Positions 4,608 through 64,000 of a stretch of 64,000 nucleotides of DNA are shown piece by piece. The stretch comes from Octopus sinensis (Eukaryota): assembly GCF_006345805.1 (NCBI RefSeq), contig NC_043009.1:56358001-56422000 (forward strand). Reading direction: 5' to 3'. Every line of letters begins with the position of its first letter. The stretch's first letter is position 1. The position numbers and the translations under genes were made by a program. The notes under the pieces are model-generated. The model did no database searches, was not told the DNA's origin, and saw nothing but the letters and a program-made list of their open reading frames with translations.

Positions 4608-6026
4608 AAAAAAAAGATAAAGGTTTCTCTCTTTATGTGAAATATAAATTGTGTGAAATATGCTCAAGCATGTTATTTCATGATAGTAAGATTTGTCTTT
4701 AGCATGGAAGATTTGCAGAGAACAAGGTAACTGGAGAGTTTATGGGTAATAAAGGCATCAAATGATAGATACAATAGAGTCATGAAATTTCAGTTCATGT
4801 AATAAATGCTAAAAGATCATGTTTAACAAAGTTTGCGTAAAAGGGACCAATGAATATATGTGTAGAATAATAACTTTTTTTTTTGGTAGGGAGAGCTTAT
4901 GGTTGATTACTTAGTCAAATCTTGTATATTACTGGTTATTTTTATCATCATATTCCTCTCCACATGAACAAAAGGCAATGTAGTCTTGCCAGGATGAAAC
5001 ACAGAAATGGATATTATAACCTACTTTTTATTGATTTGATATTCAAACTTGCAATGGAGAATAAGCAAAGCAATCAAATTGTACAAGAAAAGTTCGACAT
5101 TAGTCTTTGAATATTCAAAATTAATGTTATGTTGTTGAAATATTTACAATGGACATTTGGATATTTAATTAATAATGCATGTGACAGGATAGGGTAATAG
5201 GGATTTTTAGCCCTTGTAGATAACATCTCAAGTGGCTTTGGCAAGATAAAAATGTCATCAGTTCAAGTTATAAAATGGTTGGTGTAAAGAAGAGCATCAT
5301 GGCATCATCAATAATATAAATACAGCAATTTGTTTTTGTACATACCTGACGTGTGTGTCACACTTAAGAGAAAGAAATTTTAACTAGATCTCTTGTAATT
5401 TCTGCCAGAGGTTTGAAACCACCACCTATATGTTGTATTACTACTTCTCAACACCCATGCCAACTGGTACATCAAAGCAGCAACAATCTTAATGGGAAAA
5501 TTAGTATACTTAAATTTGATGCATGTGTCAAACAAGGGAGAGAGGAAGTGAAAAACAAAGAGAGGGAGTGGCTGAATTCCTTTGAATTCCTTTCTACAAT
5601 TGAACTGAAATTGACCCATGGCTATTAGAGGCCCAACCACACACACACACCAGATAACATGTTAAGTCTTATGTTCCAAAATAAAAATTTTGAATTTGTT
5701 TTAATTATAAAATTACACCTGAGCTAAAGAACATCTTTTGGCTTTCGGATACAACTTTTTCTTCCTCTTTCTATATTTTTGTTAAGTTACAATTTTTCTG
5801 TTTTGGTCAGGAGTTTCCCAATTTCTTTTTTCTTGTATCAAATAATGGCTGAAAGAATTTTTTAAAAATTAAATTCATAGAGCCAAACAAAATCAAAAAT
5901 ATTAATTCTATTTTTTCCCTTTCCTTAATGCTAACAAGAGCATAGTATGAGAGAGAAATTTGGGTGTTATTTCTAGCAAATTGAACAACCACACAGAGCT
6001 GTTCAATTGGCTCATTTTTTTATGTA

Positions 6027-7684: not shown

Positions 7685-8743
7685 TATTTTTACAAAGGCA
7701 TATTTTGCTTTATATGTTCAATAAATGCAACAATGCAACAGAAAGTGTGAGGAATGTTAATGCAGTATATGGGGATTCAACAATAAACGTAAGCCAGTGT
7801 CAGTGGTGGTTCTAGGAATTCCAAGCCATAAACTACAGCCTAGAAGAAGATCCTCATCCTATAAGATCTGTAGAGCTCGACAAGGACATCCTGCAAATCT
7901 AAGTGGAACAAAATCCCATTGTAACTGTTGAGGAACTAGCAGAGAAGCTTGGATTTGGTCATTCAACCATTCATCAACACCTGTGTGTCATCAGAAAAGT
8001 CAGCAAATTGGGTCAATGGGTTCCTGACAAACTTTCTAAGTCTAATCGTGCACAGAGAGTGAATGTGTGCTCTTCTTTGCTGTCATGTCTCACGAATGAA
8101 CCTTTTTTTGGACCAAATAGTGACTGGGGATGAGAAATGTCAAACACCAAAGACAGTGGGTAGGGAAAGGAGAAACACCGGCACTCCAAGTTAAAGAAGG
8201 TCTTCGCCTACATAAGATGTTGATATCTGTTTGGAGGGATATGAGAGGTTTAATCCACTTTGAACTTTTAAACCCAAATCAAGCAATAACAAAGGAGATC
8301 TACTGTTAGCAAGTCAGCACTAGAATAAAAACAACTGTTTTTAGTTTCAAGACAAAAGGTGTTCTTTCATCAGAATAATACTTGGCCACATTGAGCAAGG
8401 ATGACATTCCAAAGGCGGGAGCTGTTTGAATGGGAAACAATACCCCACCCACCATATTCGCTGGACATTGCCCCATCTGTTTATCATTTATTCCACAGTC
8501 TTCAAAATCATTTGGACAAAAATTATGAATTCTGTAGACAAAGTCAGAACAGTACTGGAGGAGTATTTTTCATCATGGACAAGTGAATTTTGGAAGAGGG
8601 AACTTGCAAGTCTACCAGGTAGATGGAAGAGCATTGTAGAAAATGAAGAGGAATATATTTTAGATTAAAAAGAACTTTGTTTATCTTAATTTTGAAAAAT
8701 AAAAGAAGTATGAAAAAACCACATTATTTATGGGATGCCCAAC
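7685..8743 (+). mobile_element. mariner (DD34D-type) transposase pseudogene with a right TIR
   Basis: RHILLY...AVYGD HTH region, GQWVP (WVPHEL-like), D-GDE-like, HPPYSLDIAPSVYHLF (YSPDLAPSD-like). Frameshifts and stops. Right end CATTATTTATGGGATGCCCAA followed by (TA)n; left TIR not found. Confidence 0.88.
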
Positions 8744-9185
8744 ATATATATATATATATATATATAATGACTGGCTTCTTATAGTTTCCATCAACCAAGT
8801 CCATACACAAAGCTTTGATCAATCTAGGATTATAGTAAGAAGTCATCCAAAGTGCCATGTATCAGGACTGAACCTGAAACCATTTAGTAGGGAAGCAAGC
8901 TTCTTACCACACAACCATACATACTCCTACTGTCTCCCACTCTCTTTCTCTTTTTCCCTTGCTCTTCCCTTTAGCTGGGTAACCATATATCCCCTCTACA
9001 GTAGCACACCTGTTTGTGCCCTCATTCCCTCTCTCTCTCTCTTTCTCTCACTCTCTCTCCGGGTAACCATGTACCTCCTCCACAGCAAGACACCTTCTCT
9101 GTCTCTCTGTCACACTCTAACCCTTCATCATCTGACACAAGATCACTTCCTCCAATGCCCCCCTCCCCTCTCAAAAATTCTTTGT

Positions 9186-9482
9186 CTTGCAAGTTACTTG
9201 GTGACCCTGCCGGTGCTGGTGTTGCATAAAAAGCATCCAGTCCACACTGTGAAGTGGTTGGCATTTGGAAGGACATCCAGCTGTAAAAATCATGCCAAAA
9301 CTGACCTCACTTGTGCTGGTGCCACGTAACAAGCACTCAGTCCACTCTGCAGGGTAGTTGGTACTAAAAAGAGCATTCAGCCATAAAAACCATGCCAAAA
9401 CAGACACAGAAGCCTGGTGTAGTCTTCTATCTGATTCCTGTCAAATCGTCCAACCCATGCCAGCATGGAAGGTGGATATTAA

Positions 9483-9517
<35 letters not shown>
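9186..9517 (+). mobile_element. Retroposon family C (ends ...TCCAACCCATGCCAGCATGGAA...AAATGATGATGAT) with an internal tandem duplication and a CT-rich upstream region
   Basis: Recurrent 3' end with (GAT)n tail. Other copies at ~106-330(-), 14268-14400(-), 17255-17500(-), 35975-36096(+), 41198-41419(+), 42165-42345(-), 45597-45810(-), 47975-48168(+) and 49366-49584(+). Confidence 0.8.
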
Positions 9518-13102: not shown

Positions 13103-14521
13103 TCTAATGAGTCCAAAGACTACGTCATGCGCCAGTGTCTCCTTTGACACAGTTTCTACAGTTTGATGCCCTTCCTAACACCAATTACTTTAGAGCAAGA
13201 AGTGAGTGTGTTTTATTATTTTATAATCACCAACTCTAGTGAGGTTCAATGCAACTTTCAAGACTATAAACCCAATGGGAAGATGGTTTTTATTCTAAGA
13301 AATGAGGGGTTAAAAGTATGGGAGAGGGGGTCAGAGCAGAACAGATTTCTTACTATTGAGGAACTGTATGACTACTGACATTTTAGAAGAGATATGTGTG
13401 TAAGAGTGCTCATGTTTTCTTATCTGGACATAAACTGATATATATACATATGTAGTGAATCTTGCATGCATGAAGTGGATTCGATCCACCATAGCCAAAT
13501 TTGAATTAACACTGCAACAGAACTGTTCCCCTGGTGGAACAAAGGTTTTTCTCTGACAGCAGTTTTACATTTTCCAGATGCCTTTAGCTAGGCCAAAATA
13601 ATGTTTTCACTACTTGACCCTTTCTAACCTCTTCTATTTCACCAAAAGCTAGCATAGAGATAACAAGACCACCAACTAAATCTATTGCTCTCAATGATAT
13701 ATCTATCCTTCTAGATCTTTATATAAGCAAGCACACCCCAAGCAAAAATCAGTTCGCACAGTCGTGACAACTCAATGAGGTCTGGCTGACCAACCTTGGT
13801 CAGAGGGAGAAATGAAGCTTACTGTCAGACAACACCCAACACTTCTTTCTAGCTCTAAAATCTCTTCTCTTACAACATCATTCTATCTGTCATGGCAACT
13901 ACTACTAAACAATGAGGAGGATACAAAAACAAACTTTACTTCGCATCCTTTTGGATTTATCATAACCTGCCCGTCAAGGCATGGTATTGTAACGTAACGG
14001 TAAATAAATACTTTCTTAAAACATCATGCATTGTTCATCTTTCACATCCTACAGCATGCAATTATAACAACAAATCTTTACCGTCACACCTGCTGACTCC
14101 AACAGCAATTCATAATAACGTTTACCAATCAATTTCTCCCGTTACAATTGGTAACCTAACTACACTTATTAAAAATTAAATCATTACACATATATCACTA
14201 TAATGTTTTAACGTCCACTATCCATGATTGTATGAAGAAGATTTTCTATGGCCAGATCTCCTTCCTCTCACCAACCATCACTTGTTTCCAAGCAAGGATA
14301 TATTTTCCCATGAAATGGCATGGTTTCATGGAAGATTGGAAATCGATGACACCACTTGTATGACAGTGACATTTGCTTACAGCTATCACGCCATATCAAG
14401 ATAAGGAGACACAAACACACACATACACATATACACACATACATACATATACAAGAAGCATCTTTCAGATTCTGCCTACCAAATCGACTCACAGAGCTTT
14501 GGTTGGTCCAGGGTTATAATA

Positions 14522-15637
14522 CAGTCCCATGCAAAAGTCTTCAGTCACTTTAAACTATTGTAAATTTCTACTAATTGCCAACTTATAAGTGAATGTTTCA
14601 CATTGCACTTTTTGCAGATGAAACACTGGCCCTGTTAGAGTTATTTTCATACCTAATTATTATATTTTGAATGAGAGGGGAAGATGCGAGACAACCACCA
14701 AAAATGGCCATGCAAAAGTTTTCAGCCGCTTCACATAAACCAATCAAGATACAGTGTTTTAAAACAGAAAAATGTCTATGATGAAAATTTATTACATAAT
14801 GTTCATTTCAAGAAGTTCTAATAAGTAAGAATTTGTCAGAAGGCCTTCAGGAAAGAAAAACGACCTACATTACATGATGAAAATGGTGAAATTTGGAAGT
14901 AAGAGTCTGATGTTTTGGGAATACATAAAAAGTGATGGTTCAAGAAAGTTGGTTAAAATTGATGGTAACTTGAATAGTGCCAAGTACATCCAGCTGCTGA
15001 AGGACAATTTGATACCAGACTTGGATGAAGGTGAGATTTTTCAACATGATGGAGCTCCATGCCACAGATTGCATGCAACACAACAGAGTCCGGCTGATGA
15101 AGGTGTTACCATATTGAAAGATTGGCCAGTTCAGAGCCCTGACTTATATATCATCAAGCAAATGTGGACTGAACTAAAGAGAAGAGTTCATCAGAAGAAT
15201 CCATGCAATCTTGAAGAGTTGTGGGAGCTCATCCACAGACAATGGCATCTCATACCTGTGAAAATGGTGAAGGATTTGTACACATCTCTTCTCAGGTGCA
15301 TTGAAGCAATTATTCAAGCTAAGAGAAGCCACACAAAATATTAACAATGTATAGTAACTTCTTGAAATGAACATTATGTAATAGATTTTTGTTATAGATA
15401 TTTTTCTGTTTTAAAACACTGTATCTTGATTGGTTTATGTGAGGTGGCTGAAAACTTTTGCATGGTCATTTTTTATGGTTATCTCACATCTTCCCCTTTC
15501 ATTCAGAACCCCTACTACAAAATATAATGATTAGGTATGGAAATGACTCCAACAGGACTAATGTTTCATCTGTAAAAAATGCAATGTCAAACATCCACTT
15601 ATAAGTTGGCAATTAGTAGAAATTTACAATAGCTTAA
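14522..15637 (+). mobile_element. Tc1-family transposon with ~300-bp IR/DR-type TIRs, internally deleted (C-terminal catalytic half only, ORF 14874-15344)
   Basis: TA at 14520-14521. Left TIR ~14522-14820 is the reverse complement of ~15350-15635. The DR CATGCAAAAGT-TTCAG occurs at ~14528 and ~14709. Motifs FVRRP, FQHDGAPCH, WPVQSPDL. Confidence 0.92.
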
Positions 15638-21579: not shown

Positions 21580-22530
21580 TACTTAGACATTTAATGTTTT
21601 TTGTTTGGCATCCACTTTCAGGAACTCCATACATTTTCTTTTTCTTACACTTGTGCATCTGGGTTCAATCACCTGTAGTGGCATTGGTACTTGAAAAGTA
21701 TCATATAACCATTCCATTGGTTTTTCCATTTTCTTGGGTTCGCTCTCAACAAATCTTTTTTTCAGTTGGTTCATGTATCTTGTATATACCTTGTCTACTT
21801 TTTACCTAGTATAGCATTTTTCCTATGCATTTGGTAATCACGCCATCTTCCCAACTCTGTTTTCCATTCTTATGTCCCCTCATAAATATCTTTTCACCAA
21901 TTTTGAAAAATTTTACTGTATTTCCCATTGCAATTTTTTTTCTTGCCAGGTAGCTATTTGTCAAAGACTGATTTTACTTTCCTCACAAACATCAGCTCCA
22001 CTGGTGACATACCTGCTGGTGTATTTGGATTTGGTGTCACATGGTAAACTCTTAAGGATTGTTGTAGAGCTACCTCATCCATGACTTCCATATTTGACTT
22101 TCTTTGGGCTCTCTTGATTGTATCAACAAAGCATTCTGCCTGTCCATTAGATCTGGGATAGTATGGAGCCATAGTTACATGTTCTACACTGAACATTTTA
22201 CAAAACTTTTTGAATTCAAAAGACACAAATTGCATTCCATTGTCAAACATTATTGCATCTGGAATGCCAAATCTGTCAAACAGCTTATGTAAAAAATTTA
22301 TCTTATTTGAGGAGGCTGGTTTTTAACACTTAAAAAATTTCTGGCCATTTAAAGAAACTATCTACTACCACTAAGCAGTAAGAACCACTTAAAGGACCAG
22401 CAATACTGATGTGTAGTGTCGACCATGGAACATTTACATTTGGCCAAGGTTCACTTTTTATCACAGGTAATTTTGCCCCTAGAGCACATCCTCTACAGTC
22501 TTTCACAAAATTTTCGATTTCTCTATCCAT
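21580..22530 (-). mobile_element. Gypsy/Ty3 LTR-retrotransposon integrase fragment (pseudogene)
   Basis: CxxC end of the Zn finger; PWSTLHISIAGP (first D lost); FDNG...SNGQAE with D35E spacing; SPVELMF. Split across ORFs 22330-22530 and 21954-22250. No LTRs seen. Confidence 0.88.
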
Positions 22531-30900: not shown

Positions 30901-31513
30901 ATTGTAATACCAAATCATTATCTGCAGCCACTTCTTTATCTCTTGTTTGTTTCATTGTTTAACGTCCACTTTTTCATGCTTGCATGGGTTGGACAGAGTT
31001 TATTGAGATTTTCAATGGGGAGATATGCTTTTGCAAAATATTGGAAATGAATTACACTCATGTATGACAACTATGACACAGTGTCAAGACAACAAGACAT
31101 GCACACGGGTACACACAACCTCCAAATCCTTTTGAACTTCCTCAACAAAAAATAGTCTAGTCATTCAGATGAATTAATCATTTTATGCTAAATTTTTATA
31201 GCAACAAATATATTTTATCAATCAGGACAAACATCCCGGAACGTTGTATTTGGCATAAAAATGTTTCTTTTCCAATTCTCTTTTAACAATTAAAAAGATA
31301 AATAAATAAATCAGGGCTGTATTGGTGTTTTCCTACCATCTATTTTGTTAAAGAATTGGAAGAAATATTTAATATGTTCACATTTCTGAAGAAATACAGT
31401 TCTAAATTTTAGTGGCTCTGGCAAATATTTAAGAATTTTAAAGCAATGCTTTGTGAGTAGAATTGGCAGATCCATCTGCCAATGGAAATCTATGGAAGGC
31501 TGTTACATATATA

Positions 31514-31638
31514 TCATCATCATCACTTAACGTCCGCTTTCCATGCTGGCATGGGTTGGACAGTTTGACTGGGGACTAGTGAACCAGATGGCTGCACCAG
31601 GCTCCAATCTGATCTGGCAGAGTTTCTACAGCTGGATA
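31514..31638 (-). mobile_element. Retroposon family C, 3' end, inverted relative to 30524-30900
   Basis: Close reverse complement of ~30775-30900. Confidence 0.85.
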
Positions 31639-46004: not shown

Positions 46005-46091
46005 CTGTGTAAATCTTCGGACAAGACATGTTTTTCCAACACCAGCATTTCCTATTAACACTACCTTGAAAAGGTATTTATAATCTTCCAT
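46005..46091 (-). CDS. RAB30: Rab30 coding exon 1 (MEDYKYLFKVVLIGNAGVGKTCLVRRFTQ, 29 codons)
   Basis: P-loop GNAGVGKT; near-identical to the known Rab30 N-terminus. Acceptor TATAG lies 8 nt upstream of the ATG (exon starts at 46099). Donor CAG|GTAAAT at 46004, phase 0. Confidence 0.97.
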
Positions 46092-48353
46092 GGAGAATTC
46101 TATAACAACAACAATAAAATAAATAAAAGAATATACAATCATAATAATAATAATAATAATAGAAACAACTGAATATAATTGCAATAATGATCAAATATAA
46201 TTACAGGTATAGAAGAAAGGTATGTTTGCTAACAGTTATGATTTGGAAACAGAATTTCAACATTCTGACAGATGAAAACAATAACATTTGTAGCAATCAG
46301 AGTACATCAGTACTGAGAAAAATTTAAAGCAAATCAGATACCAGGCACCCATCCACAAAATAACACTCATCCTTGGTGAGCTGGAAGAAAATACACCTTA
46401 CACCAGCTCCACTTTCTCAGGCTCAGTAGATGTACTTTAGAGCCCAGGTTGATGGGCTACCTGATGTAAAGAACTAAAATGTCTGGGAAAATATGTGCAT
46501 ACCAATGAAACAATGCAAGCATTGTCCACCTACATTGTTCCCAACAAGAAACATTTCTTCTCAGTACATTTCTGGGTGAGATTTACCAAACAGGATATCA
46601 CCGCATGCAAATTTCTACAAGTCTTGTGAAATGTGCTGATCTAATGAAATTGTCAGCCTCCAAAACCACTTTTATGTGAAACAGATTGAACAGGATTCCA
46701 ACTAAACCAGATCTACATCTGGTTATCTCAACCATGAAATGGAGATAGGATTTGAAGTTCACTATGACTAATCCATCCCTCTGCCTGCACCCTTTCAAAT
46801 TGCTAATGAAAAAGTGCCTACAAACACATCTTCAAGTTATGTGCTATACATCAATCCAGGACTAACAAAAACCATATCACACGAGCTATCATTACTATAT
46901 AAATATTAATAGTTTCTTCTGAGAACAAGTGAATGATTTGTGAAAACAAAATATTTACTATAAGAAAAATTTAACAATTGCAATGGTAAGGGTTACTTCA
47001 TCTTGTTTTAGGATCAATATGATTTTGTGAGGATTTACTATTAAAGATGGATTTAGAAAATGAAGTTACTGAATACAGAAGGGTAATGATTCACAAATTT
47101 TGCAGACTTAGGAACAGTTGACGACTGCTTATAGGTATTGTATGGTGTTCTTCATAAAATATTTATCTCCAAAGGATGGTAATTTTAAAAAAGTAAAGAA
47201 ACCTATAACCTTGCAGTTCTCTTTTTTTTTGGTAACAAATCTGACTCAAATCATCTCCAAAAGTCACAAAGATCCATGGTCCAGTATTCAACACCCATCC
47301 TCAAAGATAAAAAATAAATCACTAAGACACTGACCCATCACAGATAGTTTTCCAGCAGGAGGAATTGAACTCAAACTACAAAACCAATAAGTATATACTG
47401 TTGCTGCATATGTTGGTGAATATATGACTTTTGTACCCTAGTTAGAACTAGATGGCTTGATAATGGACACACATAACATTAAGAGGCAGGATACAAACTG
47501 CTAACTTCTGACATTAACTAATACTCAGCCATTTGAACTTTCATTTTAGTTATTAATAACATATTACCAGTAATACCACAAGATAAAAAAAAAAGAAACC
47601 CACAAACTTGTTAAACCTTGAAATAATGAAACAAGTACTTGAACAAAATAAAATAGACTTATGTGACTTAGTTTACACTTAATATACTTCAAGAATAAAG
47701 GAAATATATTGAAAGAAAAAGAATTTTTGCAATATATGACAGAGAAGTTATCACTGAAAGAAGGTGAAATGACAAATTACACAAAAACTATGTCATCTAT
47801 CAAATATGATTTTTACATTTAATGTAATGTCATTATTGATCTGAATTAGATCAATATTCACAATTTTCATACTTCAGGCCTTATTATGAACAGCAAATTG
47901 GAATAGCCATTAGATCATTAGATAACATGACTCACAATATTTGTTCCAATTCACTGTATGCTGTACTGGTGCCTGTGTCACGTGAAAAAGTGTGGGTGCC
48001 ACATAAAAAGCATCCAGTACACTTTGTAAAGTGGTTAGTGTTAGGAAGGGCATCCAGCCATAAAGATTATGCTAGAACAGACAATGGCGCCTGGTGCAGC
48101 CCTTGACCATACCAGCTCCTGTCAAACTGTCCAACCCATGCCAATATAGAAAATGGACATTAAATGATAAGAACATTGAACTGGATACCTTGCAGTACCC
48201 GTGAAAGTTGTAACCCTTCTGAATTCAAACCTAATCTGTTACCTGGTTTAACTCCACCACCTGACATTTTGGGTACCTTTAATGGAGTTCATGCAGGTGC
48301 AAGCTTTCAAATCTGGTTTCTGGTTTGATAATATTTTCAAACCTTCCTCTTAC

Positions 48354-48412
48354 CAGTCTTGGAAGCACTGTAAAGTGTTATGAGCTTTGCTGCTCTTGTT
48401 GAGTAAAAGATT
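48354..48412 (-). other. RAB30: Candidate Rab30 5' exon (59 nt)
   Basis: Acceptor TTTTTTTTTTCCTTTTTTAG and donor CTG|GTAAGA; lies between the promoter and coding exon 1; contains no ATG. Confidence 0.55.
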
Positions 48413-48464
48413 CTAAAAAAGGAAAAAAAAAATGTTCCTAAAATCTGTGATTATTTCTTTTAAG

Positions 48465-48765
48465 TGCAGACGTTTGCTTCCCAACCACATGGTTCCAAGT
48501 TGAGATCCGCTGTATGGCACACTGGATTGTCTTCTACTATATCCTTGGGCCAACCAAAGCCTTGTGAGTGGATTGGATAGATGGAAACTGAAAGAAGCCC
48601 ATCATGTCTTTGTCCCCCACTGCTGCTTGAGAACCAGTGTTGGTGTGCTTACATCCATGTAACTTAGTGATTTGGCAAAGTACCAGGCTTAAAAATAAAT
48701 AACTTTCCGTTCATATATGGCTGCAGTCTTATGACTGAAACAAATGGAAATGGTAAAAAGATAAA
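48465..48765 (+). mobile_element. SINE family B, decayed
   Basis: CCAACCACATGGTTCC...GTGAGTGGATT..AGATGGAAACTGAAAGAAGCCC match. Confidence 0.75.
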
Positions 48766-50789
48766 CAGACACTGCAGAATCCCAAATTACTTTCCCCTTC
48801 TACTCTTTCTGCATTCATTCACTGCTCCCGCTTAGATTTTTCTCTCAGCGTCCTCTCTCTACAGCCTCCCCACCAGGGATATACTTTCTGCTCTCATCTC
48901 TACTTCTATGGTGCCCTCCGGCCTCTTTCTCTCCCTGCTTTTGTAGAATTCACCATTCCTCTGCTCTCTGCCTTACATTCTCTCCCCACAGCTCCTCCAC
49001 CACCTCATTTCACCATCTTTAGCCTATTCCCATGAACACCCAGACCACTCTTTTCTTCAATTTCTCCAGATGCGCATCACACAGGACTACAGCTCTTTTA
49101 TATTCTCTTCCCCTGACACCATCCTTTCATGCTTGCCCTTATGATATGGTTAGCTCTAAAACTCCCAACACAACTCATCACCCTGTCCCTCCCTTTCTCG
49201 TTAACCCTTCCTTGCCCTCCTCCTTAGTGTCTATTTTGTTACTCTCCCCACTTCCACCCTCTCACAACTATCAATTTGTTCCTCTCTGTCCTTTACCCTC
49301 TCTCATTAACCTGTCTGGAATCAGCATAGCCTCTCTCTGTTATAAGGACTCTTTTAGACCCCTAGACTTGCAAACAACAAGGTGACCTCACTGATGTTGG
49401 TGCCACGAAAAGCACCCAGTGCACACTGTAAAGAGGTTGGAAAGGTAGCCAGCTGTAGAAACCATGCCAAAGCACAGAGAGAGAGAGAGAGAGAGTACAA
49501 TGTGGCCCTCCAACATGTTGAATGCTGTGAAACCGTCCAATCCATGTCAGCACGAAAAACGCACATTAAATGATGATGATGATGATAAATATTATTGTTG
49601 TTAATAGTCCTAAGTCTGAGTTTGTATTCTACAATGAACATGAACGTTCCTTATCACAGACTCCAAACACACAACCATTCATGGTAACCAGACATAAATG
49701 TGTTACGAAAAACAACTGGGTTTATGAGTGGAATGGTCACATAAGAACCTATAGAATTTAAACCATTCAGGTCTTAATATACTCAGACAAGGTTGAATAT
49801 ACATAAAGTTAACAATTGTTCTCACAATAATTTAAATACAAATCTGGACGGTGTGAAAAAAAAACAAAATATTTGCATACGTGCTATTTAAACAAACTGT
49901 GGTGGACAAGTTGGGTTAAGCATCAAAGAAATGAGAGATGTTGAGCGAACTGCCACTTCTGCCAACAATGTCAATGCTTATCTCTGCATCTGAATAGCAG
50001 ATTGTGTAATTCTTGAGTGTAAAGTATGAAATAACAAGGTAATGAAGAGGAGAAAAACCTACAGGTCAATGATCGACTGGATATAAGGTTTCGAGTTTCA
50101 ACTCTGCAATAGCTATTGTACACTTGTCTCCCAATAAGATACATGTTCCATTTGCAAGTGGGTTGTCATTTGATTTTTTCAAATAAACATTTAAAAAAAT
50201 GCGTGTAGTATGTGTGTGTCCGTGCGTGTGTACACACACGTATACACCTGGTGAATTCCGAAAGAGGCTTCACTACGTACAAATACTGCATTGCATTATG
50301 TATTAAATCAATCAATCCCAATGTAAGAAAAGACAATAATAATAATAACAACCTTCCGTTTATATATTAAACTAGGTAAAACAGGAATAGAAAAGAATTA
50401 CCATTCAATAATAACAATCTGGTTGACTGTCGACTATGTTATTTATGACGAAGTATCAAAGAATACCTTTTAGATCTAAAAAAAAAAAGCCAGTAGACTT
50501 TATACTATTACTCTTTAGACTCTAACCTATTATATGACACTTGGTTAAAAAACAAAAAACTGTTCATGGCAATTTTAAAATGGGCTATTCGCAGTTAGGA
50601 TTTGTAGGGAACAGTGATTCTCACTGAGTGCTAAAACCAAACCTTTTTGGAGAAATTTAGTTCTTCGTAATCCTTTTGCAATTTCCAACTTCAGAGACAA
50701 CCACTTACAGTGTTTTAAAAATGGTTAAAAATAATCACTTTTTTCAGCTTACATCATCAACAAGAATTGTATTTTCGCCAGAATATTTA

Positions 50790-51520
50790 TTGCTATTTAG
50801 CCTTGAGTCAGTCCAGATCGGGCAGGCCTATCATCAAAAGCGTTCCAGCCGTAATCATCCCGTCTCTTGTATATTTTTATGACTACGCTATCCAACGTGT
50901 CTTTCTGATTTCATGATGATGAGTAAACTGAGGAAGATCTGGCTGTTATTTCTAGCATATCGAGCAACTACGAAGAAGATCCCCCATCTATCTCTCCCTC
51001 ACAAATATACATCATACATAATTGGTCCCATTACACATTTGTTTATTTCCATTCTAATGTCCTCTTTTTTGCCCTTGTAGAAAATAAAGTAGTCGGCATC
51101 GTCATTGCTATTACATTTCCCTCGTTAAATTTTCGTCAACAGAATTATTATTACCATAAATGTCCAAGTGAACCTTGAAGAAATTCCTATAAATCAATAT
51201 ATGCAATGTATTCAACATTACCAAACATAAATGTATTGTTTAATGCAAAGCCTTATTCATCGTTACCATTATCTCACAACCACTTCATCCCGAAAATACC
51301 GAAAAGACACAGCTACAAGCTAACGTGGAAGCCTCTATGTGGTAATTCGACCCGCTAAAAACAGCATCCAAATCTCTCTAAATCACACATTTCTGCATTA
51401 TGAAAATGAAAAAAGATGTAATTGATAATGTAGAAATATATATACACACACACAATTTTTAAAAAAAAGATTCAAACAGGAGGGTCACAGAATGCTTTTC
51501 ATCATAGGTCTGCTCGCCCA
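50790..51520. mobile_element. Two diverged copies of SINE-like family D in opposite orientation (~50790-50983 minus; ~51319-51519 plus)
   Basis: Shared GCTTTT-ATCATAGG-CTGC and CTAGAAATA-CAGCCA-ATCT segments in reverse complement. Confidence 0.55.
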
Positions 51521-51878
51521 TGGTAAAATCTATTGTTAAATAATAAATTCAAAAAAGAAGCCTTTTTTATATATATATTTGTATTATGCATCTCAGAATA
51601 ATTCGGTGATATTCATATTTAGAATCAATTACCTATTTAACTTCAATCTGATATATATTTTAGGGTCCGAAGTTTATAATAATACTACCTATACTGCTTG
51701 GTTATTCTGAAGGTGGACGAGCTCTATACTGCACTACCAAGTTCCTAACAAAATACAATATAAATGTCTATATATATATATATATATACGTGTATATTCA
51801 TTACTCGCAACAGTAAATATTCCTAGGAATATCTCTCTCTACCTTATATATATTATACGCACACCTATCTACTCATAC

Positions 51879-51923
<45 letters not shown>

Positions 51924-52386
51924 GCATAATCTGTAGCAGTGTACTTTATATTTGTATGAATTCATATTTTCAGTAGAATGAATCAAAATAAGTATTAAAG
52001 CGAAAGAAGGAAAAAGATAACCAAGTTTAATATTTGGATTTAATTTGATTTGATTTGTAGTGATATATATATATATAGACACACACACAGGCATAATTTA
52101 TTTCTAAAATCAATTTACAGCTCACAAACAGACAATAGAGATATACATCCAAGAGAATTAACAACGTAGATGAATATTTGCAATATTTAGGTTTGGGGTT
52201 TTTTAAGAAAAAATGCTACATTATCATTAGAAAATATATAAAATTTAAAAGGCAACACACCCACTTCGTCGTCTGCTCACATCCCATACAGACACTTTAG
52301 CAAAAGCTTCAATGATTAAGCAATTAATTTAAAATGTGATCAGTTGATTTAATAGATAAACAAAAAAAATATAATAATTGGCTTAC

Positions 52387-52430
52387 CTTATGGAAGATCT
52401 TCGCGAAAAATAGTAATATTCCTGGGGAAG
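52387..52430 (-). other. RAB30: Candidate Rab30 5' UTR exon (44 nt)
   Basis: Consensus donor AAG|GTAAGC at 52386; pyrimidine-rich acceptor ending TTGTACAG. Confidence 0.4.
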
Positions 52431-52601
52431 CTGTACAAGAATTTAAAGATCAATGAGAGAAGGGTGGTGATGTAAGATATTAAAGGTTTATATATAGGGG
52501 CAATCAGAAGAGAATCATATCAAGAATAGGAGATAATGTGGCACTAAAGAAAAGAAAAAAGCTGTATTAAAGCATAAAATATATTTTACTTTTAATTATC
52601 A

Positions 52602-52655
<54 letters not shown>

Positions 52656-52837
52656 AGATGTCTATATATATGCACACATACACAGAGGCAGACAGTCAGA
52701 TGTTTATCTTCCAGAAATAGGTCTAACAAGTTATTGAATGGCTTTTATAAATAAGGCGTAAAATATAGAAAAACATAAGATTACTGAACGTACATCTAAA
52801 TAAATATATATCTAAATAATGTTTATGGAATCATATA

Positions 52838-53440
52838 AAAATGGCGTTAACCTCTCACACTGACAAATAATTTTAAATAATATTGGCAACAAAACAAAAT
52901 ACCAGAGATTCACGGTGACCAAAAAGTTCGGCAGTAAATCCCGTTAGCTTCCGGTTTTTTTAACCATTTCTATATTTGACTTTATAATTTTCTGTTCCTT
53001 TTGAATTTAAATTAGAATAAATATAAGAATGTTTTATTTTTGTCGATATTTTTTTTTAAAGATTATGAAAATATATTTCTTTTCTCGCGAACTAATTTTT
53101 CAATCACATATGTAGACTTATTTACCGCAAAAACTGTATTAACTGTTCGCTAATTTGACTGAACTCGATCTATATTTTTTAAGTGTTGATAAAATTTCAA
53201 CATAAACTGCATAAATTCTTAAAGCGCATTTTATCTTAAATAGAAAAAGGAAGTAGAAGCGAGTGTTATTCTATTAAAATAAATATATAATGATTCCAAG
53301 AATTCAAGTGAACTTCTTTCCTTAAAATTTATTTCTTTACAATGAAAGGGGGGGGGTATTTCGAATCACGTGTGCAAACAATATAGACCAATGAGAACGT
53401 CAGTCGGTGATTCTGCGTAAGCGCGAGCCGTCTACGTCAT
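52838..53440. promoter_or_regulatory. Putative bidirectional promoter between Rab30 and PCF11
   Basis: Locally CpG-rich. YY1-like CGCCATTTT on minus (52838-52846); ETS ACCGGAAG on minus (52948-52955); E-box CACGTG (53367-53372); NF-Y consensus GACCAATGAG (CCAAT 53388-53392); two CRE/ATF half-sites ACGTCA (~53397 and ~53434). Confidence 0.65.
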
Positions 53441-53702
53441 TGTCCTGCGTCTCTTAGCTGTTACTTCGACTTCTCTTGAAGATGTCTAACAGAATTATAG
53501 CATTGTGAAAGAGAACAGCAACACTAAATATATATATCGCTACTAGAAAGTAATTTTGCAGGCAGGAAGTTTTTTTTTTTTTATATATTTTTCCAATATC
53601 TATTTTTTATGGAGCAGTTCTGAAGTTGGTGAAATTTCTCCTTATATCAAAAAGCTTTAAACAGAAGATTTCACTAGACTATATATATATATACATGAGA
53701 AA

Positions 53703-53861
53703 ATGGCTGATGCCGAAGAAGTGATAGATAGCTACCGTTCGTCTCTTGCTGACTTGACGATTAATAGCAAGCCACTAATCAGTATGTTGACCATGCTTGC
53801 CGAAGATCATATCCAGTATGCCCAACACATCGTTCAGCTGATCGAGCAGCATTTACAAAAG
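53703..53861 (+). CDS. PCF11: PCF11 (cleavage and polyadenylation factor) exon 1, N-terminal part of the CID domain, 53 codons
   Basis: YRSSLADLTINSKPLISMLTMLAED matches the PCF11 CID motif Y.SSL.DLT.NSKP.I.MLT.LAEE. Donor AAG|GTTTCG, phase 0. Confidence 0.95.
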
Positions 53862-53957
53862 GTTTCGCTTTCTACATTTTTTTTTTAGGATTCTATCAAT
53901 TCGCCATCGGATTTCAATCAATATTTTTGTTTCTTTTTTTTTATGTTTATTCCGCGA

Positions 53958-53967
53958 CCGCCATCTT
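53958..53967 (+). promoter_or_regulatory. YY1-like motif near the start of PCF11 intron 1
   Basis: CCGCCATCTT in a CpG patch about 100 nt into the intron; mirrors the minus-strand YY1 motif on the Rab30 side. Confidence 0.45.
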
Positions 53968-56759
53968 TGGTTTTGTGTGATTGAAATTTGAGTGCGAAAT
54001 GAAAGGTTCTCTTATTATTATTATAATTCTACTTTATGTGTTTGTGTTTTTTTTTTATACTTTTTCTCCTTCTTCTTCCAGTAATTGTATTGTGTAAATT
54101 TTCTTATTCCTTCCTTCCCTTTTTTTTAAAATGCGAATCATATAAGTAAATAATTCAGTATAGTATAACTCCTTGATTGAATTCATAATATAGGTCAGTT
54201 AACGTTTGTTTCATGACCTCTAGTTGTAGCTTTTTTTTCTCCTTTTTCCGTATATAATATTTTATTTCAAACTGATTTATAATTTAGTGGAACGTTTAAG
54301 CTGTCATAATCATGATCATTTTATTTATTTATTACTATAGGTTCAAATATTTCTTATAATGCTTAACGTTTTTAGTAAATAATTCAATGGACGACAGACA
54401 CACAGTCTTCTCTAGTTTGAGACGAGTTGGGTGTAAAACTACAGAATTAACAATCTGAAACTTGTTACACAACCATAAGTAATGATTCAGAGTTAAATAC
54501 GAAAGGCAATTTTTGTAGAAACTGAAACAGGATTGTACACACACTTGGTTTAGTAAGCAATAATGGAACTAATGTATTCTTAATGTTAAGCATACGGATG
54601 GATTTGAAAAAGCTTCAAACAAGATCGATTCTTTTTTTTCTATTCATTTTAGCTTTGCAAAGAAAGCAACGTTTTTAGAAAATTTGCAAATCCTCGTGAT
54701 TACAAAAGAATCTTCTCAGTTCCATCAAGGTGTTTTGTATTGCTCTATGGTTATTTTATTTAGATTAACGCATTCGACATAACAGATTGGTGTCCCACCC
54801 GACTCTGCTACCCTGTAACTGTATTTTTTTAAATGCAATATTTTTTTAATTGTTAGTAATTTTTGACAAAATTAGAAGCAAAAGTTGGGGTGGGAGCATT
54901 GGCACCCTCCTCCCTGTTACCGCTAATTTCTGTAGCTTTAGCATTTAATTTATTTATTTTAATGATTTATGTTTGAAACCCTTACATTCGCAAACCCATA
55001 CCCTCGAAAAAGTATTTCCATACAATTTTATTTTGAATTTTTCCCCCCTAAAACATATCTAAACTCTACGAAATTCCTTTTAAAATATGCTGTTTCAATT
55101 TGTAGTTATTCCTAATTTTCATCTTCCCTCTTATTGCGAATTTTAGTGTGTAAATCGTTATTAAATGCAATTCATTTACTTGCTTTAGATAGGATAATTA
55201 ATTATTCAGTTAATTTTCGAAGAGTTTTTAGTTATTTTGGAACGGCGTGTTTCTCGTGTACTTAAATCTCTGAATTTTGTGTGTGTGTATTTAATTTACT
55301 TCTATTGCCAATATTACTCCTATTGTCTTTCCTATTATTTTCACATTCTTCTAAACTTTAGTGTATATGTACTTCGTGGAAGGAATCGCGTATGTTTTAG
55401 TATTCTAAGTTATTTCTACTAATATCATGCAATATGGTGCCACTGGAGTCGAATATTTAAAACTGTGTATGTATATGTGTGTGTATATATATATAATAAT
55501 GATTCGTGCTAGTTTGCAATATTTTTTTAACCACGCGGTGTCTGAATTTTTATCTTCGTTTGTATGACTTCATGTGTAGTGTGTGTATGTATGTATATAT
55601 ATATATGCATCCACAAATATGGTATACATGATACACAGCCTGTGAGGTGGGAGTAAAAGTAAATGAAGGATGCTTTCTTTTTTTTTTATACGTTATTACG
55701 CTGCATTTTATTTATATATATATAATTTAATCCGTCCATTTAGTGTTATTTCGTAATCATTTCATGTCTGCACAGGTCTTTACACTATTAGAGTATATGT
55801 AATATATGTCTACCGTCGTAGCAGTTATCACTGTCGAACGCGTATGAAAGCCAAGCTTGTACAACTTGTGACATACAATGGTTGGCTTGTGCAGGGTGGA
55901 CTGTAGCCCGAACACATTGATTCGTTTTCTAGTCTGTTAGATAAGTTTTTATTCTGAAACCCCCCAAAAAATTACAGGAGATAAAACGTCAGTAATGAAT
56001 TTCAGAATGGGCATAGCATATAGTAGTCAAAAAAAAAACAATTTTTCGATTAGCATAATTTTATTGGGTCAATATTTTCGTCTTGACCCTATTGGGTTAA
56101 TGTTGTATACTATGTGAAATTTAGTTTCATCCGTCTCCAGTTAGTATTTTCTTTGTATTTGTTTTCCCTCCGACAACTAAACCACCTCCATGTTCTTGAA
56201 ACCTCCTTGTTTAGTAGTAACTGGGCGGGGTTTCCGTTAATAGACCTTTCACCCTCTCCTTCCCCGAATTTTATTCTAATTAGCATGGTTGTTTCCCTTT
56301 TATCACTTTAGCACAATAGAAATAACTCGTAGAAAACGTCAACTCTGTGTGTATATATATACACACACGATGTTGTAGTCTTTGAAGTAAAGGAGCGGCT
56401 CTAGAGTTAACTGCAATGCAAGATTTGTTTTGTTTTTACCATTATCTTATGGAAAGCTTAAAATTCGTCTTTAAAAATTGTACTTTTTGTAATGACATAC
56501 TAACTCTCCCCTTGCTTGCCATTAGAGGTTCGTCATACAAAAATATTTAAAAGAATTTTCCGATAATCTTTTTAATCTTTGTACATATAAAATGTCGAAC
56601 ATCATACTGGAGTAGACTAAAAGCGAACAAATAATCGTTATAATTGGCAGTATCAAATAGCAGGATGTCTTTTTTTATATTTATTAGTTATTTCATATAT
56701 TTTAAGTCTTTAGTTGTTTTTCCTAGTAGCTATAAAAATGCACTTTTACAAGAAAAGAA

Positions 56760-57034
56760 GGCATTCTTTCTATATAACTCGACAAAATCAAAACATTTCA
56801 CTTCGGTTATTTTCGTGGGTTGTGGAGTATAGATATAACGAAATTATGCCAGCCATGTCTCATTTTGAACTTGAAGAAAAAAAAAGCCTTGCATATTTGT
56901 CCTTACCTGTTTCATATATGTATGTAAAATTCGCAAATTTCCAAGCAGAAAACAGAATCGAACTGTCATTTGCTTCCACGGAAATACCCGAAGTGAAATG
57001 TTTTGATTTTGTCGAGTTATATCGAAAGAATGCC
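56760..57034. mobile_element. MITE (275 bp) with 59-bp TIRs and a perfect 8-bp TSD, in PCF11 intron 1
   Basis: Arms 56760-56818 and 56976-57034 with 3 mismatches; TSD GAAAAGAA at 56752-56759 and 57035-57042. Confidence 0.9.
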
Positions 57035-60000
57035 GAAAAGAAAAATTTATCTGGATAGCCTTTTTTTTAAAGGTAAAGTTTACTTTGATCTCCATCTTAC
57101 GGTTATTATGTAAGTTTGAAAACCTATTTAAAAGTTGCTCTGTATATAAAAGTTAAATAAAAGATCTGGAAATACCTTTAAAAAAATTCTTTGTATTTGT
57201 CACTGCTGGTTATTGATAATTTTGATTTTAGTTTGTATCACTTTGTTCGATATTTTATGTACAAAGATTGAAAGGTTACAGTTTTTCTAAAGAAGTTTGT
57301 CAAAATACATTGACTGACTCGTAATTCTCTCTTTAGAAAAAAATGACGGGCGAAAATATCGGGTATTCTCTGACACAAAATTGACAAATTGCTTTAACGA
57401 AATATTTTAATTTTAATAGCTTGAACCAAGTTGTCATTTTAAAAAATAGATAACCTGGTGGTGAGTTTGAGAGAGAAGTTAAGAAAAATAAAAGCTTTAA
57501 TTATGGTTGGCAAATCCAGCCATATGCATGCTTTTTCTTCATTTCACTTTCTTTTCTATGTTCATTTGTGGATTTTATATATTAAAGCACATGCTAATTG
57601 TCATTCAGTCCCTTCGTATGATTAAAATTAAAATCGAACAAGAGGTAAGCTCAAGTTCTACTAGCCTACGATCTTGATTTAGTTTCTGTTAAACTTATTT
57701 TACACAGTTCAAGATCAGTGATTGGGAGAATATATATCTTAATCATATTGATGTCTTAGATTGCTGCAAGATATATTTGATTGTATTGCCTTGGCGTGTT
57801 ATTTGCTTTGTCTGCTCCAGGTGGCTTTAGTTTTGTGTAACTTGTTTAGGTAATGTTCTGACATCTAAATTGGAAACAATTTACTAATATCTTACAGAAC
57901 AAGAAAATGTTGCTGTTTCATTTAGTGTTCTTTTTTTTCTGTTGCAACAAGAAGTGTTACGACCTGTTCGGGTAAATCCAGTTAAATGCTTCACTGGTAT
58001 TTTCTATGTCAGATAGTAATCTGGTAGTAGTGTTTCAAATTGTCATAGTTGCTGGGAAAACAAACAAACAAAAAATACTTTGTCTCTAAAAACACTATTT
58101 CCATCTAAATTTCAGAAAACATCTTGGCAACTTCTCTGCTTTCTTTGCAGGAAATCTTTTGCCTGCTTGTCTTGTGTGGACTGACTTAATATTGAAAGGT
58201 TTCTGTGCCAATCCTCAAATTTATTCTGTACTTTTATGGCTTAAGAGAAATTTGAAAGTGAACTTAATTGTCAATTTTGGTTAAAAGAAATGTTTGGTAG
58301 TTAAAACTTTCAAAGTTAAGCATTTATACTTTTGTATCCATACGCTTATATATGGTTAAAATGGTGGGGGTGGATTGCATGGCAAAAAGTATACATTGAT
58401 ATTTATAGGTTAAATACCAAAGCCGCATGAGGTTATGCATATTGGTTAACAGTGTGGAATGATAGATATATTTTAGTATCTTCATGTGTTCGGGTTCAAT
58501 AATACAAGCCTATGTAACAATTGTTATGGACTTAACAGCTTCAGGTGAACATTTGATTCTAGATTAGAAACAAGTGTGGTGGGTGGTTTGGTTTTGAATC
58601 ACCCATGCTTTGGAAATAATTTTGTAGAACCTGTGGAAATGTTTTTCACAGCAATTTTCTGTTCACATATAGAATATTTTATTGTAGTTAAACTCTAGGG
58701 TTTTTTTTAAAAAATCTTAGTCTTCTTTGCAAGTATATGTTTAATCATTAGTTTTTGTCTGCTTTTCCCTTATTACCATTGATTGGAGGAGTTTGAGACA
58801 GTGTTCTACAGCTGGATGCCCAGCTGGCTTTTTTTTTTTAGAGTAAGGTACTATACATCATACAAATTTACAAGTTGCTATACTTTTCGCGTAGGTCATG
58901 AAAACCATCTCTGCCAGCTGAATGATCTCAATTGTTTTAACATTTGTTTTTCCATACTTTCATGAGGAAGAGATTTCTACAGTCAAGGTGCACTTCTCGT
59001 TTCTGAGCAGGGTAGTAATCCCTCCCAATCTACTAGACAACAAACAGTCCAGGCAAGGTTATACTGAGCCTTTTGTTTACAGAGATCACACATGTCAAGG
59101 AGCCCAGCAGACTTTCACATTAAATTGCAAGCAGACATATTTATCAGCTGTGAGACTTGTTTCCAGTCAGTGAACATATGTGAAGACTGGGGAAATAATT
59201 AGCTATATTTCATCTTACATCTACCAGTTTCATTCAAAAGGCATTAGATCAGCCAACAGCAACCACAGTTGGGCAGGATCACTCACCACGTTCTGAAGCA
59301 TGATGAAGAGCACTTGCCCAAGGTGCCATCCAGTGGAGTAAGCCAGAAAGCACTGCTTATAATATTTTGTGATGTATATATATGTGTTTGTCATTGATTG
59401 TTTGTTAGAATTAACTCTAGAAAATATATAACCTTTTGTGTCCATCACATGGTGATGGCTTTTGATGTTACTCAGCTGAACTCTCATTAACACTTAGCTG
59501 ATGAGTATTAATACATTCACCATATTCCACTTTACCTACTTATTAACACCAAACCAAAACTGAAAAATATTCAACTTTTGAATTAGGCTTTCGAGCTATT
59601 TAGATAACTGTTTTGTGACATTAACAGTTCCTGAAAATATCACTTCTAATAACTTGCTGCATGATATTGAATAATCAACACATAATTTTATTAGTATTTA
59701 CTTTGGTCATTCTAAATGTTGCTGGTGTTTTGTGACATGGACTCTGGCTTTTGAGATAGTTTTATTGGGGTAGAGATTTCCTTGCACTTTTGGGGGTCGT
59801 TCACTGTTGAGTTCCAATTTTTCCAACACAAGTGCACTCTCTTTTACAACTAGGTGTACTCGACTGTTTTGAGAGCAATATTTCTAGAACAAGCTGCTGG
59901 CACTTTGCTTGTCTTTTGCCCTAAACATTCAGGCCATTTGTTGGGGTCCAGTTTTCATCTGCCTCCTATTCTCACTTAGCTATAGAATAGAGGCAACCTT

Positions 60001-63348: not shown

Positions 63349-63477
63349 GTGAAACCATCACAGAAATTGCCAGTTCTATATTTGATTGATTCGATAATAA
63401 AGAATCTGGATGATTGTGAATATCCTCAGCTTTTCAGCAAAAATATAGTTGCTATATTTTGTGATACTTTTGAAAAG
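63349..63477 (+). CDS. PCF11: PCF11 exon 2 (VKPSQKLPVLYLIDSIIKNLDDCEYPQLFSKNIVAIFCDTFEK, 43 codons)
   Basis: Translated by hand. KLPVLYLIDSIIKN is the CID signature. Acceptor TTCTTTTCAG, donor AAG|GTTAGG, phase 0/0. Intron 1 spans 53862-63348 (9487 nt). Gene continues beyond the window. Confidence 0.95.
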
Positions 63478-64000
63478 GTTAGGATGAGTTGCAGTGATTT
63501 TTATGTAGATTTCTAAACCTTAATATTCAGATGGGTGGGTTTTGTGAAAGGTAATTTGGATGCTCTTTAGTTGAATAAAGTTTAGCTTTTTTTTTTTTCA
63601 ATTTTGATTATCTCTAATTTTCAATTCTCTTGTATTGATTGCTTTATTAAAGAATATATTTCAATGATTTTGTGATGTGCTTTATACATCAGATGTTTTA
63701 CATTGAACAGAGAACTTAAGTTATCAATTAATTAGTTTGTAAAGTTACTTGGCTATTTTTCTATTTTGAGTTCTTAGTACTGTGCCAAGTAGATTTGCTA
63801 CACATTAATTCATTTGCTGAATATGTTTGTAATGGAAAAGGTTTCCGAAATGTAAGAAGATTGACAGACTGACTATTGGGTTTGTATTGCTAAATATACA
63901 GGTTTTTTTGGTATATAGGTGGATGAAAAAACCAGAGGATCCATGTACAAACTTAGACAGACTTGGCAGATGTTTTTCCCTAACCAGAAACTATATGCAC

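Follow-up and report, generated by a model that had tools for sequence, protein, structure and literature searches.

Introduction

Nearly 600 conserved gene pairs were reported among 17 genomes by Irimia et al. (2012; PMC3514665), with the divergent orientation being enriched. The co-regulated 5'-5' class of these conserved ancestral microsyntenic pairs (CAMPs), such as HSPD1-HSPE1, brings together unrelated genes through divergent adjacency, short spacing and an orientation conserved in both protostomes and deuterostomes. The locus described here, within a 64-kb stretch of Octopus sinensis chromosome CM016871.1 (assembly GCA_006345805.1; hereafter, the window), contains a pair of this type, Rab30 (minus strand) and PCF11 (plus strand), which are adjacent in protostomes and deuterostomes alike. 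No discussion of RAB30-PCF11 as a conserved pair was found in the literature searched, and it may stand in supplementary pair lists. In cephalopods, Euprymna retains 275 metazoan microsyntenic blocks, each of three or more genes, despite the reorganisation of coleoid genomes, with neither gene of the pair being mentioned in the supplements of that study (Schmidbaur et al. 2022).

At the level of the promoter, the octopus locus shares with mammalian CpG-island bidirectional promoters (Adachi & Lieber 2002) the divergence of the two genes, the retention of CpGs, and ETS/GABP, NF-Y CCAAT, YY1, E-box and cAMP response element (CRE) motifs. However, mammalian CpG islands are GC-rich, whereas the octopus region is AT-rich (26-34% GC), with transcription start sites (TSSs) that are predicted. 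Trinklein (2004), Lin (2007) and, for GABP, Collins (2007) reportedly also dealt with mammalian bidirectional promoters. A further point of comparison is provided by vertebrate PCF11, which is autoregulated via PAS1, a conserved poly(A) site in its first intron (Kamieniarz-Gdula et al. 2019, PMC6458999).

This work suggests it is quite probable that Rab30 and PCF11 form an ancestral bilaterian divergent pair, with the octopus genes being transcribed outward from one promoter region at ~52.9-53.6 kb of the window. A first-pass annotation, made from the letters of the window alone, had proposed an ancient bilaterian pair, kept by shared cis-regulation, with TSSs only ~0.5 kb apart in the octopus. 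That interpretation is supported, with all three of its inferences surviving, two of them directly.

Results

Rab30 and PCF11 are head to head across Bilateria

The minus-strand gene is identified as the octopus orthologue of Rab30 by full-length identity, and by its best matches being Rab-30 across phyla. The exon containing the start codon (46091-46005, minus strand, with the ATG at 46091), located by tblastn and direct reading, is the first coding exon, and would be exon 2 of the predicted transcript. The further coding exons, at 40795-40712, 36863-36680 and 30383-30133 (including the stop codon), were identified through a Rab motif scan and tblastn. The spliced product of 201 amino acids contains a Pfam Ras domain, is the same residue by residue as the Rab-30 of O. 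bimaculoides and O. vulgaris (XP_014775221, CAI9732058), and shares 64-80% identity with the Rab-30 proteins of other molluscs, arthropods and chordates. On the plus strand, the CID domain of PCF11 begins in a first coding exon of 53 codons (53703-53861, with the ATG at 53703), which is followed by an intron of ~9.5 kb, exon 2 (63350-63478), and an exon 3 from 63919 that runs on to the end of the window at 64000. The window covers only the CID part of PCF11, with the 123 residues encoded in it matching Pfam CID with E = 3e-19. The two genes are not paralogues, as one encodes a Ras-family GTPase, and the other a CID-domain termination factor.

The start codons of these divergent genes are separated by 7,612 bp, in agreement with the 7.6 kb given by the first-pass annotation, whose bounds of 46005 and 53861 are the far edges of the first coding exon of each gene. 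The 5'-5' arrangement is uninterrupted by any other gene or RNA gene: the sole open reading frame of at least 110 amino acids between the start codons (49032-49385) sits inside a repeat insertion, and Rfam and tRNA scans of the window returned no match. At the DNA level, the window matches CM016871.1 of O. sinensis with 100% identity across 35,959 bp, and is ~96% identical to O. vulgaris, and ~90% identical to O. bimaculoides.

For each Rab30 orthologue, the 10 kb upstream was inspected, and the identity of the neighbouring gene confirmed by tblastn with the octopus PCF11 first exon. The head-to-head arrangement was present in all ten species listed below, which comprise six molluscs, a brachiopod, an insect, a hemichordate and a cephalochordate. 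The distance between the start codons was 7.6 kb in O. sinensis, 6.2 kb in O. bimaculoides, an estimated 7.8 kb or thereabouts in O. vulgaris, and 8.2 kb in Argonauta hians; in the cuttlefish Sepia pharaonis, 0.55 kb separates the PCF11 ATG from Rab30 exon 1. Outside the cephalopods, the spacing was mostly about 1-2 kb, with values of 1.0 kb in Lottia gigantea, 1.2 kb in Lingula anatina, 1.7 kb in the sawfly Athalia rosae and 1.0 kb in Saccoglossus kowalevskii, together with 7.0 kb in Branchiostoma floridae. The sequence matches identify these neighbours as PCF11 orthologues, with the N-terminal exon being 55-92% identical in the nine loci scanned outside O. sinensis (the gene of O. vulgaris being recognised instead by 96% DNA identity), and Pcf11_helical, Pcf11_C and zf_PCFS4 domains being matched in the neighbours from Sepia, Branchiostoma, Lingula and Athalia. 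As the pair is found on both the protostome and deuterostome sides, it therefore predates the protostome-deuterostome split, and the antiquity proposed by the first-pass annotation is borne out by these ten species.

The human genes are the same two neighbours as in the octopus. We take them to be divergent at 11q14 and tens of kilobases apart, a spacing that would be much larger than the 1-8 kb between the start codons in invertebrates, and would differ from the <1 kb of the CAMP 5'-5' class. Hence the description of the octopus arrangement as being that of human holds for the divergent orientation only on this presumption. [quoted passage not shown]

In the sampled Lingula anatina, PCF11 exon 1 and the first Rab30 coding exon occur twice, 3.7 kb apart (4923-5075 and 8663-8812 of locus L021; also locus L022); either the shared promoter unit has been duplicated locally in tandem, or this is an artefact of the assembly. 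In the annelid Capitella, the Rab30 coding range is just 874 bp and lies within an opposite-strand Ras-family gene call, with a NAA15-like gene upstream rather than PCF11 (L019 5686-14574); hence the locus has been rearranged in this annelid.

Cuttlefish Rab30 transcripts begin beside PCF11

Direct reading of the sequence identified a long polypyrimidine tract and an AG acceptor 8 nt upstream of the Rab30 ATG, at a position common to O. sinensis, Argonauta, O. bimaculoides and Sepia, and used by Sepia transcripts. Therefore the Rab30 ATG exon is internal, with a non-coding exon 1 upstream. A TSS near 46-48 kb, which the first-pass annotation had named as an observation that would refute its proposal, is argued against by this acceptor and by the cuttlefish transcripts joining at the same position.

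The nearest Rab30 cluster representative (97% identity) came from decapodiform cephalopod RNA-seq assemblies. Ten independent Logan RNA-seq contigs, mapped to Sepia (Acanthosepion) pharaonis, defined a non-coding exon 1 (L015 9462-10336) with the donor CAG|GTCAGT, a 43.6-kb intron 1, and then the ATG exon, joined 8 nt before the ATG. The PCF11 start codon is at 8917 of the opposite strand, and these contigs have their 5' ends 545-665 bp away from it, with six of the ten at 664-665 bp. Read in the Rab30 sense, the cuttlefish 5' region contains in order ACTTCCGG (ETS), CACGT and CGCCATCTTG (YY1), with most contigs starting at the ETS motif, and YY1 being ~50-170 nt downstream of the 5' ends. The cuttlefish TSSs are thus <1 kb apart, provided that PCF11 has no upstream non-coding exon.

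The same homologue search matched the exact octopus Rab30 protein to genome assemblies only, and to no RNA-seq assembly, while the PCF11 N-terminus returned six distant matches, none of which was from a cephalopod. When cuttlefish and squid transcripts were compared with the window, only the coding exons aligned, at 78-85% identity; the untranslated regions (UTRs) did not. The S. pharaonis Rab30 gene spans ~93 kb (L015 10001-103021), relative to ~23 kb in the octopus, and a 237-amino acid Rab30 model from this cuttlefish begins within the non-coding exon 1, where an in-frame ATG further upstream has probably led to an annotation artefact.

A candidate octopus Rab30 exon 1 close to PCF11

Multiple properties of the octopus sequence point indirectly to a non-coding Rab30 exon 1 at ~52,950-52,387, namely motif order, a donor site, CpG depletion, nucleotide skew and conservation. 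On the minus strand, CCGGAAG (52,954-52,948) is followed by CGCCATTTT (52,846-52,838), reproducing the ETS-then-YY1 order of the cuttlefish. The site CATAAG|GTAAGC after 52,387 is the top-scoring donor-like sequence in the minus-strand interval 53,100-46,092, and is conserved in O. bimaculoides. The predicted exon, of ~0.55 kb (52387-52955, minus strand, the 5' end being approximate), would be similar in length to the transcript-defined exon 1 of the cuttlefish, and would be followed by a 5'-UTR intron of ~6.3 kb (46092-52386). This putative intron 1 is CpG-depleted up to ~49.6 kb, and holds lineage-specific insertions; indeed, the whole of the sequence from 44 kb to ~49.6 kb is CpG-depleted in the manner of a transcribed gene body.

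The cumulative A-T skew of the plus strand climbs through Rab30, reaches its maximum at 52,938, and drops through PCF11. Counted from the PCF11 ATG, three Octopus species have this peak at +723 to +787, and Sepia has it at +463. As the Sepia peak adjoins the 5' ends defined by transcripts, it therefore calibrates this signal. Identity to O. bimaculoides is 0.97-0.98 at 52,692-52,991 and 53,392-53,491, as against 0.88-0.91 between these segments. With the PCF11 TSS placed between the CRE/CCAAT/E-box block and the ATG, at 53,440 to 53,700, the two octopus TSSs would be roughly 0.5-0.75 kb apart. Hence the ~0.5 kb suggested by the first-pass annotation gains indirect support from motif order, the best donor, the CpG profile and the switch in skew at 52,938. 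The starts of the octopus genes are probably no more than ~1 kb apart, in a single compact control region.

Two (TA)n microsatellites are located in this region, one at 52600-52660, in the predicted Rab30 exon 1, and another at 53680-53697, just upstream of the PCF11 ATG. Their lengths vary among the three Octopus species.

A single CpG-undepleted domain spans both 5' ends

Across the whole window, the ratio of observed to expected CpG dinucleotides (CpG o/e) was 0.265. The highest values among 500-bp windows were at 52751-53250 (1.72) and 53001-53500 (1.67), the latter also having the most CpGs (19). The ratio was 0.0-0.28 across 44-49.75 kb, being ~0.1 around the Rab30 ATG exon (44-48 kb), while the first ~3.7 kb of PCF11 intron 1 (53862-57500) keeps its CpGs (o/e ~0.7-1.2). 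Thus the window contains one CpG-undepleted, presumably unmethylated, domain at ~49.7-57.5 kb, centred on both 5' ends, and is otherwise without any such region. The octopus promoter region is elevated only in CpG o/e, rather than in GC content. Sepia, Argonauta and O. bimaculoides likewise each have one CpG-undepleted domain across both 5' ends. The first-pass annotation was correct that there was a single promoter-like CpG patch in the window; it was too narrow in limiting this to 52.8-54.0 kb.

The ETS, E-box, NF-Y and CRE motifs reported by the first-pass annotation were all found where it had placed them. The ETS/GABP-type CCGGAAG (52948-52954, minus strand) is at the putative Rab30 TSS. 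The core promoter block of 53367-53439 contains an E-box CACGTG (53367-53372), an NF-Y CCAAT (53388-53392), a CRE TGACGTAG (53432-53439, minus strand) and a second CRE half-site TGACGT (53397-53402). This block is 98% identical to that of O. bimaculoides, and its ATGACGTAG is unchanged in Octopus, Argonauta and Sepia. A second ETS-like site, CAGGAAGT (53563-53570, plus strand), is 133 nt upstream of the PCF11 ATG, kept in O. bimaculoides, and probably in the PCF11 5' UTR or proximal promoter.

YY1 motifs had been described as mirroring one another on either side of the patch, and both are present. The Rab30-sense CGCCATTTT (52838-52846, minus strand) is within the predicted exon 1, and is also present in O. 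bimaculoides. The PCF11-sense CGCCATCTT (53959-53967, plus strand) does not lie upstream of the gene, being instead within PCF11 intron 1, 257 nt past the ATG. A sense-oriented YY1 motif is also found in this intron at +252 in O. bimaculoides, about +337 in Argonauta (counted from the ATG at 1848) and +229 in Sepia, and hence in all four cephalopods scanned, including O. sinensis. In amphioxus and Lingula, the YY1 site is upstream of the PCF11 ATG.

The four motif patterns searched each had two to three matches per 64 kb on both strands, with five of the nine matches being inside the 1.1-kb patch. Part of this clustering is expected, because most of the motifs contain CpG, and the patch keeps CpG. 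Conservation is therefore a stronger argument for the motifs than clustering. Each of the nine species scanned has the half-site TGACGT at 175-454 bp upstream of the PCF11 ATG, a range of distances picked after the data were seen, with the background probability of such a placement in each species being 0.008-0.175 (locus-specific). CCAAT boxes occur alongside this PCF11-upstream CRE. The sole remaining copies of the ETS, CRE and YY1 patterns in the window (1522-1528, 13120-13127 and 21841-21849) are isolated in CpG-depleted sequence, with no sign of a second promoter.

Cephalopod PCF11 resembles the vertebrate gene in having its intron 1 directly after the first coding exon, and in the first kilobases of this intron being CpG-undepleted with a conserved YY1 motif. 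However, no equivalent of PAS1 was evident in the cephalopod PCF11 intron-1 stretches scanned (~1.7-8.8 kb long, that of O. sinensis being the first 2.2 kb), which had no tandem AATAAA. In the O. sinensis stretch, there was no sense-strand AATAAA at all, despite it being 68% A+T. Lingula PCF11 has three AATAAA motifs in a 40-nt stretch (+760..+797), which recalls PAS1 in intron 1 of the vertebrate gene.

A lineage-specific insertion in Rab30 intron 1

A GC-richer, SINE-like insertion of 0.9 kb (48650-49550; also L013 9700-10200) is shared by O. sinensis and O. vulgaris, but O. bimaculoides does not have it. In the annotation of O. vulgaris, a Rab30 isoform beginning MLMREEFS has a coding 5' exon inside this insertion, homologous to ~49311-49296 of the window (minus strand). 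This exon at ~49.3 kb was considered as the ancestral first exon of Rab30 and rejected, as the insertion is lineage-specific, and the ATG is AGG in O. sinensis. The O. vulgaris exon is instead taken to be a lineage-specific exonisation.

Discussion

The arrangement of Rab30 and PCF11 can be best explained by a single promoter region at ~52.9-53.6 kb, TATA-independent and with its CpGs retained, from which both octopus genes are most likely transcribed outward. PCF11 would most likely start just downstream of the CRE/CCAAT/E-box block at 53,367-53,439, and Rab30 at the ETS site near 52,950. The Rab30 transcript would then consist of a ~0.55-kb non-coding exon 1 carrying the YY1 site, spliced from 52,387 to the acceptor 8 nt before the ATG at 46,091, across a 6.3-kb intron. 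Such a housekeeping-type bidirectional promoter, with its two core elements ~0.5 kb apart, would leave too little room for a harmless breakpoint, and the persistence of the pair would thereby be explained. We infer that some elements are common to both core promoters, and that the genes have been kept together by such shared cis-regulation.

Some observations weigh against this explanation. Both octopus TSSs and the donor at 52,387 are predictions from the genome sequence, rather than being based on transcripts, and the O. vulgaris annotation places a 5' exon at ~49.3 kb, such that Rab30 may have alternative starts or exons. When Rab30 exon 1 and its promoter were compared between Octopus and either Argonauta or Sepia by sensitive local alignment, only short motifs and low-complexity matches were recovered, and the Rab30 side in Argonauta had no exact match to ETS or YY1. 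Strong footprinting is not afforded by O. sinensis and O. bimaculoides, which are too alike (~92% in introns), and the distance range of the conserved CRE was chosen post hoc. Lastly, no PCF11 was present within 10 kb of Rab30 in Capitella or in the nemertean Lineus, meaning the linkage is not indispensable. These were nevertheless the only sampled taxa without it, whereas the first-pass annotation had regarded an absence from all intermediate taxa as the pattern expected of chance or convergence.

An alternative is that the genes have two separate promoters, with the main octopus Rab30 TSS at 49.7-52.3 kb, or in the ~49.3-kb repeat exon, more than 1 kb from that of PCF11. The CpG-undepleted domain does reach down to 49.7 kb, with an o/e of 0.6-0.87; identity to O. 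bimaculoides reaches 96-99% in several 100-bp blocks at 50.0-51.4 kb; and the coding sequence of the O. vulgaris isoform starts in the exon homologous to ~49311-49296. However, that exon belongs to the 0.9-kb insertion missing from O. bimaculoides, and has no start codon in O. sinensis, while the cuttlefish transcripts begin beside PCF11. The skew maximum (52.94 kb) and best donor (52.39 kb) are likewise not at 49-51 kb, and the ETS and YY1 motifs within the interval are at 52.84-52.95 kb only, making separate promoters unlikely. A somewhat better prospect, albeit still one that we regard as rather improbable, is that the linkage is kept by a shared unmethylated or open-chromatin domain, or by PCF11 elements in Rab30 intron 1, with Rab30 as the bystander of a regulatory block. 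This is compatible with a shared promoter region, and would make breakpoints costly even where the TSSs have moved away from each other, as in human. Both mechanisms have been described for conserved pairs (Irimia et al. 2012, PMC3514665), and in Octopus, Sepia and Argonauta alike, both 5' ends lie within a single CpG-undepleted domain of 7-8 kb. The adjacency of the human genes in the GWAS table is also consistent with it, as would be their presumed divergence across tens of kilobases. Yet start codons are just 1-1.7 kb apart in most of the invertebrates sampled, where the simplest constraint is that a neutral breakpoint has no room; regulatory blocks typically involve developmental transcription factors, which neither gene encodes; and a comparison of Rab30 intron 1 between Octopus and Argonauta revealed no conserved non-coding element, with blastn of Argonauta to the window aligning exons only.

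The pair could also have been retained neutrally, with the adjacency simply unbroken so far, and the likeness between motifs being generic to housekeeping promoters. CRE, CCAAT, ETS and YY1 motifs are indeed common in CpG-rich promoters generally, and Capitella and Lineus have lost or relaxed the linkage with no obvious consequence. Nevertheless, the same neighbour, the 5'-5' orientation and the short spacing have been kept in ten species over more than 500 million years, including coleoids with heavily reorganised genomes (PMC9023564), when only about 600 such pairs are known among 17 genomes (Irimia et al. 2012, PMC3514665). Hence chance is an extremely improbable explanation, and the single promoter region at ~52.9-53.6 kb is preferred.

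PCF11 is a dosage-sensitive factor, which terminates promoter-proximal and divergent transcription. This raises the speculative idea, to which we attach very little probability, that the CRE-bearing promoter and the sense YY1 sites just inside both transcription units constitute a feedback unit, in which the level of PCF11 sets the output of its own promoter in both directions. Were this the case, Rab30 would depend on the dosage of PCF11 in all Bilateria, which would account for the resistance of the pair to coleoid reshuffling.

Although very old, the pair is not unusual, and does not represent a new kind of system. Its value is rather as a well-delimited case of two genes that have been head to head since the bilaterian ancestor, even in the rearranged genomes of coleoids. 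The ~0.9 kb at 52.8-53.7 kb is a small fragment suited to testing bidirectional promoter function in a cephalopod, and the analysis flags a positionally conserved CRE across the sampled phyla. It also corrects the octopus Rab30 gene model, which gains a putative non-coding exon 1 located 6.3 kb upstream of the ATG exon.

Other features of the window

The PCF11 exon-1 region at 53792-53891 is 100% identical to that of O. bimaculoides. In addition to the SINE-like insertion, Rab30 intron 1 contains a ~0.6-kb block (46650-47250) without an O. bimaculoides counterpart, which reflects an insertion or a deletion, and is probably another repeat. Copies related to the SINE-like insertion are found at ~9300-9500 and 31500-31570 of the window. 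Two remnants of transposase-like genes were also identified: an open reading frame at 14874-15344 (plus strand) matches Pfam DDE_3 with E = 6e-8, and another at 987-1544 (minus strand), which has no Pfam match, resembles the N-terminal part of a Tc1/mariner-type transposase.

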